DNA of 64,000 nt from Vitrella brassicaformis CCMP3155. Lineage: Eukaryota; Protista; Chromerida. Below, one piece after another: positions 37,219-64,000 of the stretch (position 1 is its first letter; the number at the start of each line of letters is the position of its first letter). The notes under the pieces were generated by a model. That model was given only the letters and a program-made list of their open reading frames with translations. It did no database searches and was not told where the DNA came from. A program made the position numbers and the translations under genes. The DNA is taken from the NCBI GenBank assembly GCA_001179505.1, contig CDMY01000193.1:109079-173078 (forward strand). The letters run 5' to 3'.

Positions 37219-37650
37219 ATGACTTCCCTTCTTTTCGTCAATCTGTCAGTCGTTGTCGCGTCTGCCGTCAATGGTGTATCGTCTCTCACCCTCACACACG
37301 AGATTATTGGACTCGCGCTGATCATTGCGATGGAGTGCGCATGTGAAGGGATGGTCCTCGTGGTCATGGTCAGGTGGGCAAACCTGCCCATGGTGTCGTC
37401 ATGGCGGGAGAAAGGGGTTGTTCGCTGCATGTTTCTGACCTGCCTCCTGGCCGCCACCGCTTGGTCAGACATCCACGTTTCTCTCTATTACCTCCCGCAG
37501 GCCGCATGTCTGTCTCTACCTTTTCCATCATCTGTGTGTCTGCAGCGTTCTCGTGTGGCTGCCGTTCATGCACATGGCGGTGCGTCGTTCCATCGGGCAA
37601 GAGAAGTGGCGCGACGTGGATGCGGAGTTTTTTTGCCCCACTTTCTCTGA
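37219..37650 (+). CDS. Hydrophobic ORF (cassette gene 2, copy 2), probably part of a spliced gene
   Basis: MTSLLFVNLSVVVASAVNG...IIGLALIIAMECACEGMVLVVMVRWANLP...LTCLLAATAW. Conserved with 61538-62317 on the minus strand, including a likely tgtctgcag acceptor. Confidence 0.45.
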   Translation: MTSLLFVNLSVVVASAVNGVSSLTLTHEIIGLALIIAMECACEGMVLVVMVRWANLPMVSSWREKGVVRCMFLTCLLAATAWSDIHVSLYYLPQAACLSLPFPSSVCLQRSRVAAVHAHGGASFHRAREVARRGCGVFLPHFL

Positions 37651-37744
37651 TGTACTTTTCTGATTCTTGCGCCTTCAGAGGATGAGAAAAGAGAGGGGCC
37701 GATCCATTGACTGCTCTGCATGAAAATGACTTGACATAATTTTG

Positions 37745-38157
37745 ATGCGAGAAGTAAGTGACAAAAATGCCTTGTACGTGAGGGAGCATACAAGGACAGC
37801 GATACGGAAGCAGGGACGATTGGAGGCAGGAGCGCGGGGGGGGGACAGGGGGGCTGCTGCTGCACCAGGCCGCAACGTGCAGCAGTCCTTATCTCAATGC
37901 GGCCTGTGTCAGCGCATGATGGATATCCACGCAGGCAGGGAGACAGGAGAACACAGCACACCGGAGCACATACACGAGCCGACACTCATATACACGTGTG
38001 TGTGTGTCCGCAGACGGTGTTGGCTGGTGGTGCTGTCGGCAACCATGGTGGGGCGGCGGGAGGGGGAAGGGGTCGCGGCAAGGCTGCTGCCAAGGGGCGA
38101 GGGGGGAGGGGCAGGGGCAGGTCAGCCGACATTCTTCAGCACCCGACATTATGGTGA
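37745..38157 (+). pseudogene. Truncated TOP3-CTD gene (exons 1-2 only, cassette copy 2)
   Basis: ...QSLSQCGLCQRMMDIH and the RGG exon TVLAGG...GRGGRGRGR are present. Downstream exons 3-7 are absent; unrelated sequence follows about 38205. Confidence 0.6.
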
Positions 38158-38526
38158 TGGATGCGATGCGTGAGTGTCTCCATGTGTGCATCTGTTCCCC
38201 AACTCAATGCACTCTGTACAGCCACACACGATGGATGGGCGATTCAATGGCGAATTGTGTCTCTCTGTCGCGCAGCTGCAATAAGTCAAGTGAAATGGAA
38301 AAGAAGGTTGAATTAACGAAAGAAGAGCCATGCGTCACCAGGCACCATCATCAATCAAGCCGTCCCAAGCACACACACACACACAAATGGCACGGTTCCG
38401 CGCTTGACTCACGATCTCCTTTGTCGGCGGGGGTGAGACGGATCTCGCTGACTGACACCTCAGTCGGTCAGCTAGCTACTGGCTCCTTCTGCTCTCCTTC
38501 ACTTGACTGACTGGTCCACTCCACAC

Positions 38527-39698
38527 TCACTCCTTCCTGAGGTCCACTTTGCTCTTGTTGACGCCCGTCTCATCAATCACATACACCTCGGCGTAGTCAC
38601 CTGCACACACACATACACAGACAGACACAGACCAGACACAGCACATGACTCCGCCCTCCCTGCGCTCAGATCAGATCATCCCACCCCACCTGTGTAAATG
38701 TCCCTCTCGCCAGCAGCGGCGATGACGTCCTTGGCCAGGTCAATGAGGTCTGTCTTGTCGAGCGGCTCGAGCTGCTTGGTCTGGTTGGTCTTGCCGATCT
38801 GGTTGTCCAGCACAGAGGTCACGAGCTCCGCCCCGGTGCCCTGGGAGACGTACGGGATGCGCTCGAAGCTGCCGATGGCGTCGTAGCCGTAGACAGCCCC
38901 CTTGCCCTCCTCGTCCAGGCCCACCACCACGTTGAAGGTGTAGTAGGGGAAGAACCGCTTAAAGTACAGACGGGTCGACAGCAGCTGCGCCACTGCATTC
39001 ACAGACGGCTCACGGCGATGCGCGTGCTCGTACTGGGTGATCAAAATCTGGGGGAGGGAGTGCAGTGCGGGCAATCAGAGAGGAGAGAGGGATCAGTCAG
39101 TGTGTCGACTCATTTCATGAGGGAAGCAGTGCTTGCTTCCACGCAGACAGACGATTAGGGGCCTGTCTGTCTGTCTGTCTGTTTGCCTGTCAGGTTGGGT
39201 GCGTGCGTACCTTCATGCGTTTGTGTAGCTCCACCATCTCGGCCTGCATGCCTCCGGTGAGCACCACACACTTGGACGTCCTGCAACGCAACGCAACGCA
39301 TCGTAACGCACACACATTGATCAGACTCACTGGTGGCTGGGCGTGGCGTCTGCTTACAGTTGGGTGCATTTGGTCGTGTTGCGCGAGAGGATTCTCATGC
39401 CCGAACTGAGACGCGTGTCGGCCATGGCAACGGCATACGTCGGACCAGCTACTGCAAACACCGTCCTGCACCCGACCCGACACACAACACAGTTTCGTCT
39501 CAAGAGATCTGTGTCTGTGTCGATCTGGTGTGATGTGGTGTGGTGTGGTGTGGTCTGCAGGGCTTGAGCCCACCCTCCGTTGTTCTGGTAGGGCATGAAG
39601 CGATGCTCCATCGGCGGGTTGGACACGGGGCGCGGCACAGATCCGTGGCTCTGCATATGCTGCTGAAGCCCCTCACCAGAGGACCACTCTCCCATCAT
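38527..39698 (-). CDS. PSMB1: 20S proteasome subunit beta type-1 (beta6/Pre7)
   Basis: Spliced product: FMPYQNNGGTVFAVAG...ADTRLS...LSTRLYFKRFFPYYTFNVVVGLDEEGKGAVYGYDAIGSFER...GERDIYTGDYAEV...LRKE*. Start is 39698 or 39656. Confidence 0.95.
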
Positions 39699-55959: not shown

Positions 55960-56259
55960 NNNNNNNNNNNNNNNNNNNNNNNNNNNNNNNNNNNNNNNNN
56001 NNNNNNNNNNNNNNNNNNNNNNNNNNNNNNNNNNNNNNNNNNNNNNNNNNNNNNNNNNNNNNNNNNNNNNNNNNNNNNNNNNNNNNNNNNNNNNNNNNNN
56101 NNNNNNNNNNNNNNNNNNNNNNNNNNNNNNNNNNNNNNNNNNNNNNNNNNNNNNNNNNNNNNNNNNNNNNNNNNNNNNNNNNNNNNNNNNNNNNNNNNNN
56201 NNNNNNNNNNNNNNNNNNNNNNNNNNNNNNNNNNNNNNNNNNNNNNNNNNNNNNNNNNN
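55960..56259. other. Assembly gap (300 N placeholder)
   Basis: Run of 300 N flanked by G-rich sequence. Confidence 0.99.
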
Positions 56260-58073: not shown

Positions 58074-60110
58074 TCACCTCCCCCTCCCTCTGTCTGCCGC
58101 TTGCACCGCTTGACTCAGCCACAGCAACGCACCTCCGAACACCGTCCACAAACGCATCGGCCGCACCATCGTGCATGCCGCCCTCCCCGCTCTCGGCTGC
58201 ATCGAGCAGGCGTCTCTGCGGCAGGCTTGGTATCGGTGGCGGCGACCAGATGTCCTGACTGTCCTCTGTTGCTGCTGTGGGTGGAGGGGGGAAATGGAGC
58301 AGTGAGGCCTCGCCAAAGATGTCACGCAGCAGATAGTAGAGCGAGAGGAAACCCGCTGATGGGATGGCACGTCATATACACAAATGTGTTTCCCCGTATG
58401 GCTTGTGTGACGTACGTTGCCACTTACGCCTTTGCAGCAGCTGTGTAGTGTCGGGCTCGGCGGTGCGGAGGAGGGAGCTCACACACTCCTGCACACACCA
58501 CACCACACCACACCACAACGCGCCACATGGAGTGACAAGACTGCCTGTGGGTCTTGTGAGGGGGGAGGAGGGACACCCCCACGGACCATCAGGGCGATTG
58601 CGTAATTCTCCTGCTGCTGCCTCAGATCCCTCGCATGGCCATTGCGGGGCGGCCGACACTCCTGTAAACACACATACGTCCATCCATCCATCCATCCACA
58701 CAGAAGCGGTTGTGTGTGGGCAGCTCACGTCGAGCACTAGGCTCCTCACGATATAGTAGCCGATGGGCAGGAGAGCCGTCGACAGCGCATCGAAGCCGAG
58801 CTCCCTCAAACCCTGATCAGTCACCACACACACACACACACACACACAGGCCTGTGCATTGCAACTCAGGCGGCTGGGACCACAGCACACGACCCCTCCC
58901 TCCCCCTCTCCCAATGTGCTAGCCTACATAGAGTGCGCCAACTTTGCTGGCGTACGACACGCGCATCGACTCCGGTTTGGCGGCGCTGCCGCTACTGCTG
59001 CTGGCCGCCCGGCTGGCGAGTTTTCTGCCCTGGTCGACAGTGGGCGTCCTCAGCACCCGCTCGTAAAGGTTGCCGAGGTGCAGGGCCGCCGGACCACGCA
59101 CCGACGGCGGGAAACTGAGAGGCAGAGAGAGAGACCAGCTATCAGCGGGAGATTTCACTCATGCGGCACGGCCTCGCTGATGTACCTGCACACAATGTCG
59201 GCCAAGTGCTGCGCCCCACAGACAGACAGACAGACAGACCGACACGATTGGTGGCCGTACGTTTGTGTTGCTTGTGTTGCATTCCCTTCACTTCACCCGT
59301 GCAGCGATTCTTCTGACGCTGAGCTCAGAGGGGTGGAAATCCTCCATCGCTGCACACACGGGGGGATGAAGTGAGGGCTGCGATGCGGGCAGGAGAGCGA
59401 GATGTGTGTGTCAGCGACTGCAGTGCTGCTGATTACTGCCGTATCCATAGGCGAGAGTCCACTGGATGAGCGGCAGCATGTAGGCGTCAATCTGACGGAC
59501 ACACAGACAGGCAGACACCACACCAGCAGCACAAAAGGGCAATGAGCACAGAAGCCCGCTAGGTGTTGTGTTCCAACCGATGATCCATCCATCCATCCAT
59601 CTGTGTGTGCCTGTCGTGTCGGCGTACGTGTCGCTCTTTGTGTTGGTGTGTGAGGTGCGGGTTGCTCAGCAGCGCCCGTACAAGCGACAGACCCACACGC
59701 CGCTCGCGAAGCTCCCAATACATGCCCTAGTGCGTCCATCCATCAGTCAATCAACCACATTGGCAGAGAGGGAGAAACCAGCAGAGAAAACACCACTGGC
59801 AGTGAATGCAGTGCACCCGTCCCGCTTGGCTCACCCTCTGGTTGACTTGCGTCAAGATGAGCCGCACAATCGGCGGCACCGAGGCGCTCACAGCTATCTC
59901 GCCAAGCAGATCTGCACACAAGGCAAGGACGCAGTGAAAAATGCATCCGTCAGCCTCTGTGTGTGAGGCTCTGCTTGTCTGCCGGGATGACTGACCATTG
60001 ACCCTGGATTGGTCTCTGGCGTCTTCGAGGCACCTGAGTATCTTCTGCAGCAGGTGGCGCGACTCGAGCGAGTCCGGCGGGGCACGGAAACCCGATATCG
60101 ACACCTCCAT
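58074..60110 (-). CDS. Multi-exon hypothetical helical-repeat (HEAT/ARM-like?) protein
   Basis: Manual splicing gives MEVSISG...SRVNDLLGEIAV...QRGMYWELRERRVGLSLVRALL...IDAYMLPLIQWTLAY...SELSVRRIAARHLADIVCRYISE...LRELGFDALSTALLPIG. The 3' end is unresolved. Confidence 0.55.
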
Positions 60111-60221: not shown

Positions 60222-61452
60222 CTATCCCCCCCTCCCACGCCCTCTTCCTCTCACTCCTTCCTGCTGCGGCGGCGGAGGTGGAGCCCCCCGCCCACCACCA
60301 CCACCAGCAGGCTGTGGCTGGTTGTTGTTGAAGCCGCCCCTGAAGCCCCGACCAGCCGTCGACAGGGAACACTTCTGAGACACCGCACACACACACACAC
60401 ACAAGTGAGAGAGAGGGTGAGATGATGCGGTTCAAGTTCGCTCAGTGAGACTCACTGACGGGGTGTGTGCATTTGAAGCAGCGGAAGTCGCCAGACACAT
60501 TGCCGAAATCAGCCGTAGCATAGTCCATCTGACCACAAGGATGGGGCAAAGGCAAGCTACTGTGGGGTGTGCGCCTGTCCGTCTGTCTGCCTACGGGTGG
60601 GTTGCGGAAGCAGTGCGGGCAGATGTGGTGCGACCTGCCCGTCTCCTCGTTCCTCACACTCAACGCCTACCGACACACAGAGAGAGGGAGACGTTGATCG
60701 TGAGACCGACCGGCCGACACCCTAACCAGACCTGAAAGTGGCAGATGGGGCATCTCTGATTGTGTGCCGTGAGCTGGCCTCTGGATGGCAGCTGCAGCAC
60801 GGTGGGGCAGTTGTTGCTGTAGTTGGTGCACACCAAGTAGCGATCGTCCCTCCTGCGATAGACTGACAGACAGACAGACAGACAGAGGGAGAACCTCACC
60901 ATCGCCGGCCAGCAGCTGTGGTCTGATTCATGTGTGTGTGTGTGCATGTGTGTGTACCTCCGCCCCCTGCCGCCCCACCACGGCCACGACCACGACCACG
61001 ACCGCCCCTGAACAAAATATGCACAGAGACACTCACGCATCCATCACCATAATGTCGGGTGCTGAAGAATGTCGGCTGACCTGCCCCTGCCCCTCCCCCC
61101 TCGCCCCTTGGCAGCAGCCTTGCCGCGACCACCACCACCGCCCCTGCCCCTTCCTCCTCCCGCCGCCCCACCATTGTTGCCAACCGCTCCACCAGCCAAC
61201 ACCGTCTGCAGCACGCACACACACCCCTGTGTGCTCGCGTGTGTGAGCAGTGCTCTCCTGTTTCCCTGCCTGCCTGCCTGCCTGGAGGTCCATCATGCCC
61301 TGGCACAGGCCGCACTGCGAGAACGGCTGCACGTTGCGGCCGGGAGCAGAAGCAGCCCCCCTGCCCCGTCCCCGTGCTCCTGCCTGCGATCGTTCCTGCT
61401 TCCGTATCGCTGTCCTTGTACGCTCCCTCACATGCCCCGCTCGCATCAACAT
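60222..61452 (-). CDS. Stand-alone DNA topoisomerase III-beta-type C-terminal Zn-finger + RGG protein (256 aa, no catalytic core)
   Basis: Seven exons in frame (61452-61282, 61205-61081, 61007-60958, 60862-60732, 60666-60595, 60528-60460, 60374-60222; 771 nt; first intron GC-AG). Motifs: PFSQCGLCQGMM, RYLVCTNYSNNCPTVLQLPSRGQL, RCPICHFQ, HICPHCFRNPP, FRCFKCTHPKC and RGRGRGRGG*. Confidence 0.8.
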
Positions 61453-61537
61453 ATTTACCCATACGTCAAGTCACTTTCATGTCGGAACAGTCAATGAATC
61501 GGTCCCCCTCTTTTCTCATCTTCTGAATATGCACGAA

Positions 61538-62317
61538 TCAGAAGAGTACATCAGAAAAAGTGGGGCAAAAAACCGTCGCATCGGCATCGCGCCACGTCAT
61601 ATGCATCGGCATAAATGGCAGCCACACGAGAACGCTGCAGGCACACACAGATGGTAGAGAGAGACATGCGGAATGTGGGACGTAATAGAGAGAAACATGC
61701 GCGACTGACCAAGTGGTAGCGGCCAGGAGGCAAGTCAGAAGCCTGCAGCGAACGACCCCTTTCTCGCGCCATGACGACATCATGGGCAGGTTTGCCCACC
61801 TGACCATGGCCACGAGGACCATCCCTTCACATGCGCACTCCATCGCAATGATCAGCGCGAGTCCAGTAATCTGGTGTCCGAGGGTGAGAGGCGATGCACC
61901 ATGGACGGCAGAGGCGATCAATATCGCCAGATTAATGTAAAGGAGGGAAGTCATTTCGGCCTGCATACGAATAGACAAAGATGAACAGAGTATTGCAAGC
62001 AATCTTGGCTGAGTATTGTACCAGAGACCACAGACTGATCTGTTCGCACAGAGAGCGCAGGTATCTTGACGGAAGAAATGAACAGTGTGAGACAGAGAGA
62101 AATGCATATGCATGTTCCCCCCATATGAGTACCGTGGTGTGATCTCCAGTAAAGCTAAGGCTGCCTGCAGACTCACAACGTTCTTGCCGAGCCTCGGGTG
62201 TGTTCTGATATAGGCGAGGGCTGCAAACGAGTACGATTTCTGCTGCTGGCGCTGCAGCCCTTCATGACTCTTGGCTGGCTCCTTTTTTGCAGCTATGGGA
62301 TTGTTGTTCTTGAACAA
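61538..62317 (-). CDS. Hydrophobic ORF (cassette gene 2, copy 3)
   Basis: 259-codon ORF homologous to 36860-37650. The upstream part of the + copy has a stop, so the true exon structure is uncertain. Confidence 0.45.
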   Translation of the reverse strand: MFKNNNPIAAKKEPAKSHEGLQRQQQKSYSFAALAYIRTHPRLGKNVVSLQAALALLEITPRYSYGGNMHMHFSLSHTVHFFRQDTCALCANRSVCGLWYNTQPRLLAILCSSLSIRMQAEMTSLLYINLAILIASAVHGASPLTLGHQITGLALIIAMECACEGMVLVAMVRWANLPMMSSWREKGVVRCRLLTCLLAATTWSVAHVSLYYVPHSACLSLPSVCACSVLVWLPFMPMHMTWRDADATVFCPTFSDVLF

Positions 62318-62864
62318 TGTATTGTTGAACCGGGCCTTAAGGAGCCTCTGTATCTGATACAGGGCAAGACACAGCAGGCATCTTTATTCAAGCATCTTTG
62401 TCCACGCCTACCGACAGAAACAACGCAATATCTGATGGACGCACGGATGGACAGAAGCACTCATTAATTCTTCCATCCATTCACACACCTTTCATTCGCT
62501 TGTATATCTCTTAGTGACTGGTAAACTTACGGGTGGGAAGAAGAATATCAAAGATCATGTCAAATCTGAGACAGACAGGCGATGGTGGCATCAGCGAGTA
62601 TGTGGGATTCACGTGGTCTACATTGAGATGAGAATGCTGTAGGCCAGCTTGCTGCTGAGTGTAGGCGCTTCAGCTTGTAGCATCCTGATCGCAACACACA
62701 CAAGATGCGATCATTCGATCAGAAGCACATTCACATGCAGCCCACCGGGGAAAGAGGATGTAAGCTATGGCTGGCAGCGTCATCAGCAGTGGATTGCATG
62801 TCGGAAGTCCCTCCTGAAGCACAACAGTCACCATCAAAGCGAATTCCCTGCTGCGTTTGTGGCT

Positions 62865-64000
62865 CTAGCTCTCACATGAAAGTACCTTAATGGATCGTAC
62901 CACCTTGTTGCAAATCCCTGCGGCAGGTAGGAAGGCACTAAGATGAATTACAGCCATATGAAACCTTCTCTCCGGATTCGCAGAAGCGTATCGAGGAGAG
63001 AGAAAATTAACCCATATGACTTTCATAGTGTACGCGATCACAAAAGCTGCCGTGGCCCTCATTGCATATTCCCGTGGTGCTGCAATCTTAAGCGACCCAC
63101 TGGCAGCAGTGCGGCGGAAGTATGCGTATGTGGAGACAATTAGAGAGCCCCAGACCGCAAAAAGAACGAGAAAGATAATCTCTCTTCCCCAGTGGCTCTC
63201 CAAGTGGTAGTGGTTTGCAAGCGATATTATAAGAGAAAGCGCCAGCGGCGGACTGAAAACGAACCACTCCTTCTTCAGCGCGGTAATCATTCTCCGCGGG
63301 TCAGATCCATCAGTCGTATGTACACAAATCAGCATTACCGCGATAATCAGTGTGATACGGCGAATCACATCGAAGGGGAGCCCAAAAAGTCTCGAAGTAC
63401 ATGAGTGAAAGTAGAGAAAGCTGAGGCCCACAAGGATGATGGCAATAAGCGAAGCGCCGGTCAACTGCAGTAGAATACATCTGGCGGCCCTTTTGATAAT
63501 CAGCAACAGTGGTTCAGGCGTAAAAACCGCACCGACAAGCACTTCAGAGCCGTCCACTGTCTCGTATTCGAGTGTTGTAGGGGCCTCTTCATAAAAGGCT
63601 TCGTATCCCGCGGCCTTTCTGAACGCAAGATACATGCATGCACAGATGTTTTAACAGCGATACGATCTAACCCTGCTGTGCATCTTACCTGAACTCACGA
63701 GCCAACTGGGCTATCGCGCTCTCCTCAGGACGCAGCTCACCCATAGACGAATCCCTCCGGCCGACATCTCCCCCCACGTCTCCGAGACCCTTGTTGCCGT
63801 CGGTGTTGATTGTGGCGCTTCTCTGGCTGGCTGTCACATCGGTGCTCGTGTTCGAGGTGACCGACCCCCGTCTTTCGTCGCCGTGTGCTGCGGTCGTAAT
63901 GCGCTCGCCTAGAGAGACTGCTGTTTTCTTCTGAATCTCATGCTGTTGATCGGACTGTAAGGATGGGGAATCTGATGAGAAACTGGATGAGAGACCTAGG
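62865..64000 (-). CDS. Two-exon multi-pass membrane protein (cassette gene 1, copy 3; 5' end outside window)
   Basis: Exon 1 ends at 63689 with AG|GTAAG, intron 63688-63619, exon 2 63618-62865 in frame (RKAAGYEAFYEE...). Confidence 0.7.

Follow-up and report, generated by a model that had tools for sequence, protein, structure and literature searches.

Which gene, if any, is represented by a short run of topoisomerase-like zinc-finger exons to which no enzyme is attached? The question is raised by a minus-strand gene at positions 61462-60222 of a 64,000-nucleotide (64-kb) stretch of Vitrella brassicaformis CCMP3155 contig CDMY01000193.1, referred to below as the window, which the first-pass annotation had described as a stand-alone C-terminal zinc-finger/RGG protein of the topoisomerase III-beta (TOP3B) type. 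The reading favoured here, to which we assign a probability of about 0.6, is that the locus is an expressed DNA-level partial duplicate of a topoisomerase III gene, i.e., a young or decaying fragment and not a conserved stand-alone domain protein. The gene carries neither Toprim nor Topoisom_bac nor the catalytic tyrosine, and its third zinc motif is followed directly by an RGG tail, without the later zinc ribbons (motifs 4-5 of TOP3B or the Topo-I-type ribbon). The open reading frames (ORFs) upstream belong to membrane, kinase and other genes, and no topoisomerase core was found in the window by motif scans and tblastn with topoisomerase pieces; in line with the first-pass annotation, none precedes the fragment.

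Relationship to topoisomerase III

The stop-free piece running from exon 5 through intron 5 to exon 6 was compared with 1.84 billion representative proteins. This yielded P0004 and P0006, both fragmentary relatives, with no self match, no Vitrella protein and no full-length enzyme among the representatives, and the loci L001-L012 were obtained from the contigs of these two proteins together with a metagenome scan with an alignment. The translation of the window gene in its ancestral frame was 46% identical to residues 728-796 of L009 over 69 residues (blastp, expectation value (E) 6e-18), a likeness to a true topoisomerase III that lies far above chance. In the local alignment the two sequences stay colinear all the way from the linker to motif 3, passing through ..QP-x-CGxC..M-[ED]-L, a Gly-rich insert, R-x-L-x-C, LP..G.L, RCPxCxFQ, ICPHCF..PP and RCFxC...C, and the Gly-rich insert of L009 occupies the same place as the insert of exon 2. 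The knuckle of exon 1 lines up with the CGxC knuckle of the L003, L005 and L009 topoisomerase III genes, and exon 4 aligns with the same three loci. Derivation of the exons from the C-terminal zinc-finger region of a topoisomerase III is well supported.

Of these relatives, L009 is one intronless ORF of 1222 codons from a TTG, or 1181 from the first ATG, with matches to Toprim (E 1.2e-11) and Topoisom_bac (E 1.6e-103); in L005 the zinc-finger module lies directly after the core, and in L003 a Topoisom_bac fragment lies upstream of the module. L009 scored 610 bits against human TOP3A and 431 bits against TOP3B, L005 scored 317 bits against 193 bits, and for L003 the best match was TOP3A (E 5.6e-5), with no TOP3B match at E ≤0.01. 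Judged by these scores, the closest relatives appear to be alpha-type enzymes of uncultured eukaryotes. The zinc-finger origin proposed by the first-pass annotation is supported, and its TOP3B label is not. The only bridge to human TOP3B is an alignment of P0006 residues 7-53 with TOP3B residues 667-713 (PDB 9CAH; E 0.013), the L005 alignment gains about 13 bits with a longer TOP3B chain, and the link to TOP3B seems weak and indirect. No counterpart of motifs 2-3 was seen in human TOP3A when P0006 was compared with the PDB.

Other searches gave less. Exon 4, the exon 5+6 piece and two small profiles matched no topoisomerase in the PDB, the profiles being spoiled by intron-encoded residues. Pfam searches with single exons returned sub-threshold zinc-finger noise only, and no match to Zn_ribbon_Top1, which is present in P0006 and L003. 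Homologous-protein searches with P0006, with exon 4 (within a 126-residue ORF) and with the L009 module returned nothing; for the exon 4 query this is a weak blank, the length window of 0.55-1.75 times the query excluding a 236-272-residue product.

The intron positions indicate how the exons were copied. L003 and L005 share the phase-0 intron directly after ...FQ (intron 4), which falls between the same codons in both; L003 also shares a phase-2 intron placed a few codons ahead of R[YF]L.C, and another L003 intron lies within one codon of intron 6. Six introns are present and parental ones were kept, so that the fragment is not a retrocopy or processed pseudogene, and on these shared positions the window gene is a partial duplicate made at the DNA level.

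The module has been characterised in human TOP3B, where, as a 2025 review describes, residues 612-717 form three zinc motifs of the C4, D1C3 and C3 types that bind DNA upstream of the cleavage site (PMC12318649), and where both the zinc-finger domain and the RGG box strengthen substrate binding and increase processivity (PMC12318649; PMC10969213). The window gene has the same order of motifs 1-3 as TOP3B (PDB 9CAH chain A), in which they stand directly after the catalytic core, and shares with it a C4 site built as two knuckles, a second site of the form ..CP.. then ..CPxCxxxPP, an RGG box further downstream and, on the assumed donor of intron 6, a C3 site CxxCTHPxC. It differs from TOP3B in having no core and no motifs 4-5, in the four Cys of its motif 2 (CPIC..CPHC against the human CPLD..CPYC) and in the C-x6-C second knuckle and long Gly/Arg insert of its motif 1. 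Compared with the alpha-type genes (L009; L005/L006/P0006; L003/P0004), identity is 37-54% across motifs 1-3 and the signatures CPxCxFQ and CPHCF.NPP are shared, but those genes have a full Toprim and Topoisom_bac core before the module and a Topo-I-type zinc ribbon after it, with CCHC knuckles in L009.

Some further features of the related loci were recorded. L009 (7757-11425) has a poly-Gly insert within zinc motif 1, further poly-Gly tracts, RGG repeats and two CCHC knuckles and occurs in several metagenomes; L007, L008, L010 and L011 are identical to it over the part compared, and L012 differs in its C-terminal tail. The topoisomerase III gene of an uncultured marine eukaryote in L003 has an apparent 48-nucleotide intron at 895-960, recognised by splice signals only.

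The spliced transcript and its reading frames

In a three-frame reading from 61800 to 60100, the exon boundaries were set first from splice signals and then mended against RNA evidence, which consisted of spliced Logan contigs flagged "RNA?" from four public runs (X1, X7 and X8 among them). Fourteen of the listed joints across three neighbouring minus-strand genes have ends reading CT..AC or CT..GC, as minus-strand introns look, and therefore the four runs were treated as RNA. The seven exons of the first-pass annotation were confirmed by the splice signals and the contigs; they lie between 61462 or 61452 and 60222 and are separated by introns of 65-105 nucleotides (nt), GT-AG except for one GC-AG, in a window of about 58% G+C. 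As for the six junctions, introns 1, 4 and 5 are seen directly in RNA and intron 2 directly in X7, whereas intron 3 is placed by depth arithmetic only and the intron 6 joint is not among the matches listed.

The X7 joint 61000->61080 corresponds to intron 2 with one 6-nt repeat unit missing as well, a version of exon 2 shorter by 6 nt is expressed in the same run, and a 53-nt coverage in X1 is consistent with the canonical acceptor of intron 2. The position of intron 3, whose joint is not among the matches listed, was taken from the contig depth table. With a contig depth of 101.8 in X7, the mean of 22.2 over the 197-nt bin 60858-61054 corresponds to 43 covered bases (60958-61000), and in X1 a value of 13.7 at a contig depth of 50.9 corresponds to 53 bases, i.e., a 50-nt exon 3 (60958-61007) and three more (CTG) that are a chance overhang matching both the intron and the end of exon 2. 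The depth arithmetic in the two runs therefore gives exon 3 a length of 50 nt. At intron 6 there are two candidate donors: GTCAGT leads to THP/KC and the RGG tail (a slash marks the junction), and GTGAGT, 4 nt further on, leads to a Trp-rich tail. The former is kept in another copy of the locus (copy A, described below) and the latter is not, and THP/KC is also the outcome in the relatives; motif 3, CFKCTHP/KC, depends on this assumed donor. In its frame exon 7 ends in ..GRGFRGG.. and ..RGRGRGRGG, a C-terminal RGG box.

At the intron 5 junction the contigs of all four runs read ...ACCG/ATGG..., which departs from the window by one base, at 60595, without changing the residue in the zinc-finger frame, and the X7 contig differs from the window by two 6-nt deletions and two substitutions in exons 2-3 (61001-61154). 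These differences point to a second near-identical expressed copy or allele, and copy A may be the variant of X7. Apparent joints and loose ends at 61265-61285 and 60292-60310 were set aside as (CCTG)n and (GGT)n repeat matches, an initial exon model with a 73-nt exon 6 and ATG 61452 was dropped, and models with exon 3 skipped or extended were dropped once the depth arithmetic had given the 50-nt exon.

All the Cys clusters listed by the first-pass annotation (CGLC, C-x6-C, CPIC, CPHC and CFKC-THP-KC) and the RGG tracts are present in the DNA, but they do not form one intact protein, because in the observed mRNA the first knuckle and the internal RGG tract are read in a frame that does not carry on into the rest. 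Exons 2 and 3 together measure 175 nt (1 mod 3), and passage from the CGLC frame into the zinc-finger frame of exon 4 requires 2 mod 3; in the variant copy seen in X7, with an exon 3 of 44 nt, the sum is 163 nt and the remainder is the same. The ORF from ATG 61452, which in exon 1 is the ancestral frame, encodes SQCGLCQGMMDLQ, the first zinc knuckle, together with the Gly/Arg insert that exons 2-3 supply; by this remainder it reads exon 4 in the wrong frame and ends, 157 codons long, where exon 5 begins. The 771-nt ORF of the first-pass annotation does exist; its 256 codons begin at ATG 61462, 10 nt upstream of the claimed end, run through exons 1-3 in non-ancestral Trp/Gly-rich frames and enter the zinc-finger frame from exon 4. 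It contains C-x6-C, CPIC, CPHC, CFKC-THP-KC and the terminal RGG tail but lacks the CGLC cluster and the internal RGG insert that had been assigned to it. The four ligands of motif 1 are split in this way between two ORFs of the RNA-supported mRNA (CGLC in exon 1, C-x6-C in exon 4); the ligands of motif 2 (CPIC of exon 4, CPHC of exon 5) share one frame when intron 4, verified by RNA, is removed.

The GGN-repeat exons (61081-61205, 60958-61007 and 60222-60374) are open in several frames, and their alternative frames give Trp/Gly-rich strings (WW, WSWSW, WWWWW) that resemble WG/GW tracts.

Copies of the two-gene unit and its neighbours

Self-comparison of the window showed at least three occurrences of a two-gene unit in which a membrane-protein gene is followed by the fragment, in line with the amplification proposed by the first-pass annotation. 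Copy C is the inverted copy, i.e., the 61462-60222 gene with its upstream membrane gene, and copies A and B lie on the other strand (Table 1). The three are 78-99.7% identical with the intergenic region and the introns included, as segmental partial duplicates are. The similarity of copy B ends within intron 2, after which a proteasome gene follows on the opposite strand. A 343-nt inverted repeat (33546-33888 against 64000-63658) is 99.7% identical across 30 kb and lies beside an assembly gap; compared with 78-87% elsewhere in the unit, this suggests recent gene conversion or an assembly problem. A proteasome-subunit exon at 38679-39074 on the minus strand (Pfam Proteasome, E 1e-16) marks the end of the duplicated segment after copy B, and the window has three assembly gaps of exactly 300 N (26584-26883, 33889-34188 and 55960-56259), the second of which hides most of copy A.

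Two linked membrane proteins had been proposed beside the fragment; a multi-pass membrane gene does lie immediately upstream on the same strand, but it looks like one gene rather than two. It matched no Pfam family, and the protein atlas gave hypothetical proteins only. Its minus-strand introns are seen in RNA at 61634->61710, 61959->62021, 62064->62133 and 63618->63689. Its stop at 61538 lies 76 nt before ATG 61462 and 86 nt before ATG 61452, and there are stops in all three frames between the membrane gene and the ATG of the fragment. An unspliced RNA contig (61839-61439) extends from the last intron of the membrane gene over its stop into exon 1, and therefore either two transcripts overlap or there is read-through; no listed joint ties exon 1 to upstream exons.

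Elsewhere in the window, protein kinase exons are found at 28808-29653 on the plus strand (Pfam Pkinase, E 3.7e-26). Downstream of the fragment, a minus-strand gene at 58100-60110 has at least six RNA-verified introns and a first exon without a Pfam match, and lies outside the duplicated unit.

Table 1 Features of the fragment, its membrane-gene neighbour and the copies of the two-gene unit in the window
Feature	Position	Strand	Description
Exon 1, coding part	61282..61462	-	Two ATGs: 61462 opens the 256-codon ORF, 61452 the ancestral frame
Intron 1	61206..61281	-	76 nt, GC-AG, (CAGG)n repeat inside; RNA joint 61205->61282 in X1, X7 and X8
Exon 2	61081..61205	-	125 nt; Gly/Arg-rich in the ancestral frame, Trp/Gly-rich in the frame of the 256-codon ORF
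Intron 2	61008..61080	-	73 nt, GT-AG; direct in X7
Exon 3	60958..61007	-	50 nt, (GGTCGT)n RG repeats; length breaks the ancestral frame; depth arithmetic
Intron 3	60853..60957	-	105 nt, GT-AG, donor GTACAC at 60957; placed by depth arithmetic
Exon 4	60732..60852	-	C-x6-C (second knuckle of motif 1), LPSRGQL, RCPICHFQ (first knuckle of motif 2); RNA piece 60731-60853
Intron 4	60667..60731	-	65 nt, phase 0, directly after ...FQ; RNA joint 60665->60731 in all four runs
Exon 5	60595..60666	-	Second knuckle of motif 2, SHHICPHCFRNPP
Intron 5	60529..60594	-	66 nt, no stop in frame; RNA joint 60529->60596 in all four runs
Exon 6	60460..60528	-	Linker and start of motif 3 (RCFKCTHP); donor GTCAGT assumed
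Exon 7	60222..60374	-	KC, RGG/Gly/Pro-rich tail, stop TAG (60224-60222)
Multi-pass membrane-protein gene	61538..64000	-	Upstream of the fragment, continues past the end of the window; stop 61540-61538
Copy B	34814..38191	+	Membrane gene and exons 1-2 of the fragment only; 78-87% identical to copy C
Copy A	33307..34604	+	5' part of the membrane gene 33307-33888; 300-N gap 33889-34188; end of intron 5 to exon 7 34189-34604

What the fragment may encode

Under the favoured reading, the duplicated stretch would have comprised the linker behind the catalytic core and zinc-finger motifs 1-3, with the low-complexity RGG tail next, and would have arrived behind a membrane-protein gene, after which the two-gene unit would have been amplified locally into copies A and B, which stand in tandem, and the inverted copy C. 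Transcription and splicing at the inherited introns take place in copy C and apparently in one near-identical copy or more, and a one-base frame offset in the Gly/Arg-repeat exons 2-3 splits the ancestral ORF in two. The product might be a protein of 157 residues with the first knuckle and an RGG tract followed by out-of-frame sequence, or one of 256 residues that starts at ATG 61462, has an overprinted N-terminus rich in Trp and Gly, and retains half of motif 1, the whole of motifs 2 and 3 and the RGG tail. As neither TOPRIM nor the catalytic tyrosine is present, cutting of nucleic acid is impossible, and either product, if translated, would be a non-catalytic binder of single-stranded DNA or RNA via zinc ribbons and RGG repeats. 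The locus resembles partial segmental duplicates and transcribed unprocessed pseudogenes in being truncated relative to its parent, in keeping introns, in its broken ancestral frame and in its amplification together with a neighbour; it is unlike them in being well expressed and correctly spliced, in the survival of a long ORF and in the in-frame exon indels between its copies.

The last of these differences is one of several observations that weigh against a fragment in decay. Between copies, the six exon indels all have lengths divisible by 3 (18, 3, 18, 3 and 9, with a further 9 at the ATG), intron indels (7, 5, 19 and 8 nt) are not, and the in-frame exon indels argue for some coding constraint, past or present. 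Every zinc ligand is retained in the DNA. The contigs of the fragment are 2-7 times as deep as those of the upstream gene, unlike a transcript strongly targeted by nonsense-mediated decay, contig depth being a poor measure. The boundary of intron 3 comes from depth arithmetic and not from a listed joint, and the Vitrella parental gene is not among the sequences compared, which bears on both the age of the copy and the state of its parent.

The substitutions between copies speak less clearly. Between copies B and C, those in exons 1-2 fall at codon positions 1/2/3 as 7/9/16 in the ancestral frame and as 16/7/9 in the frame of the 256-codon ORF, a third-position excess in the ancestral frame that seems weak (p about 0.1 by our own chi-square estimate). 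Exon 7 of copies A and C differs by 2/8/5 in the RGG frame, with no third-position excess, and copy A keeps the frame and the stop of this exon despite 3- and 9-nt indels. Exon 6 and the intron beside it are identical between copies A and C, a pattern suggestive of gene conversion and not of constraint. The evidence is mixed and fits a fragment that was once coding in its ancestral frame and later underwent a frame change in its repeat exons; the evidence for selection is weak.

Set against this background, it is possible but rather improbable that the 256-residue ORF is a real, functional, lineage-specific protein in which topoisomerase III motifs 2-3 and an RGG tail have been joined to a new Trp/Gly-rich N-terminus, derived from the RGG repeats by translation in another frame. 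Such a protein would be a binder of RNA or single-stranded DNA, perhaps also a competitor of topoisomerase III or a recruiter of partners. The decoy or effector role suggested by the first-pass annotation is speculative. The ORF is open over seven exons from the first long-ORF start of the region, its transcripts are abundant and correctly spliced, the exon indels keep frame, and the sole RNA/genome difference at 60595 is silent in its zinc-finger part. Yet a 9-nt indel removes ATG 61462 from copy B, the substitutions between copies B and C favour ancestral third positions and not those of this ORF, and exon 7 shows no excess at all; composition alone keeps the GGN-repeat exons open in all frames, and no homologue was found among the protein representatives or in the homologue searches. 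The short low-complexity RGG/RG repeats at its C-terminus, with others internally in the ancestral frame, recall RGG-box RNA-binding proteins, from which it departs in that the internal tract lies outside the long ORF and that no RRM or KH domain is present. We regard as unlikely the more specific proposal that the ORF is translated and selected as a new, locally amplified nucleic-acid-binding protein whose WG/GW-like tract could serve as an Argonaute hook, and which would be co-inherited, and perhaps co-expressed, with its membrane partner.

The two remaining explanations we consider very improbable. That the exons are the 3' end of a larger gene, i.e., a full topoisomerase III with its core elsewhere (joined by distant or trans-splicing, or separated by misassembly) or a fusion to the membrane protein, would agree with the unspliced contig that extends out of the last intron of the membrane gene, past its stop, to 61439 in exon 1, with the stop-to-ATG distance of only 86 nt and with a possible acceptor, ..gatcgcag/GCAGG, within exon 1. 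However, no listed joint leads from exon 1 to an upstream exon, the 86-nt spacer has stops in all three frames, contig depths differ between the membrane gene and the fragment, and the same order of membrane gene and fragment recurs in copy B and probably in copy A, so that it is not a one-off assembly error. Of the three outcomes that the first-pass annotation had named as refuting it, none was observed: splice junctions exist, no listed joint leads to an upstream core, and the sequence can be aligned with the C-termini of TOP3. Slightly less probable still is the one intact 256-residue stand-alone domain of the first-pass annotation, with all five Cys clusters, an internal RGG insert and a terminal RG box; its motifs are all in the DNA, colinear with topoisomerase III in the ancestral frames, and a minor isoform with an exon 3 of a multiple of 3 is conceivable, for example from the GTGAGG donor at 60899 (47-nt intron). 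Neither the RNA-supported 50-nt exon 3 nor the 44-nt version of the variant copy joins the frames, however, and the only canonical in-phase donor would produce that 47-nt intron, below all 14 introns seen (61-136 nt).

The meaning of the locus depends on its product. If the partial duplicate is decaying, it would be an ordinary by-product of segmental duplication. If a working protein is made from it, the locus would be a natural experiment on the zinc-finger module of topoisomerase III alone, without strand passage, and would illustrate cleanly how a gene can be born from a partial duplicate whose low-complexity region has shifted frame. As to the family, the sequences of the related loci indicate that the three-motif module known from animal TOP3B is also present in alpha-type topoisomerase III of uncultured eukaryotes, which makes the module probably older than one would gather from the alpha/beta labels of the human proteins.

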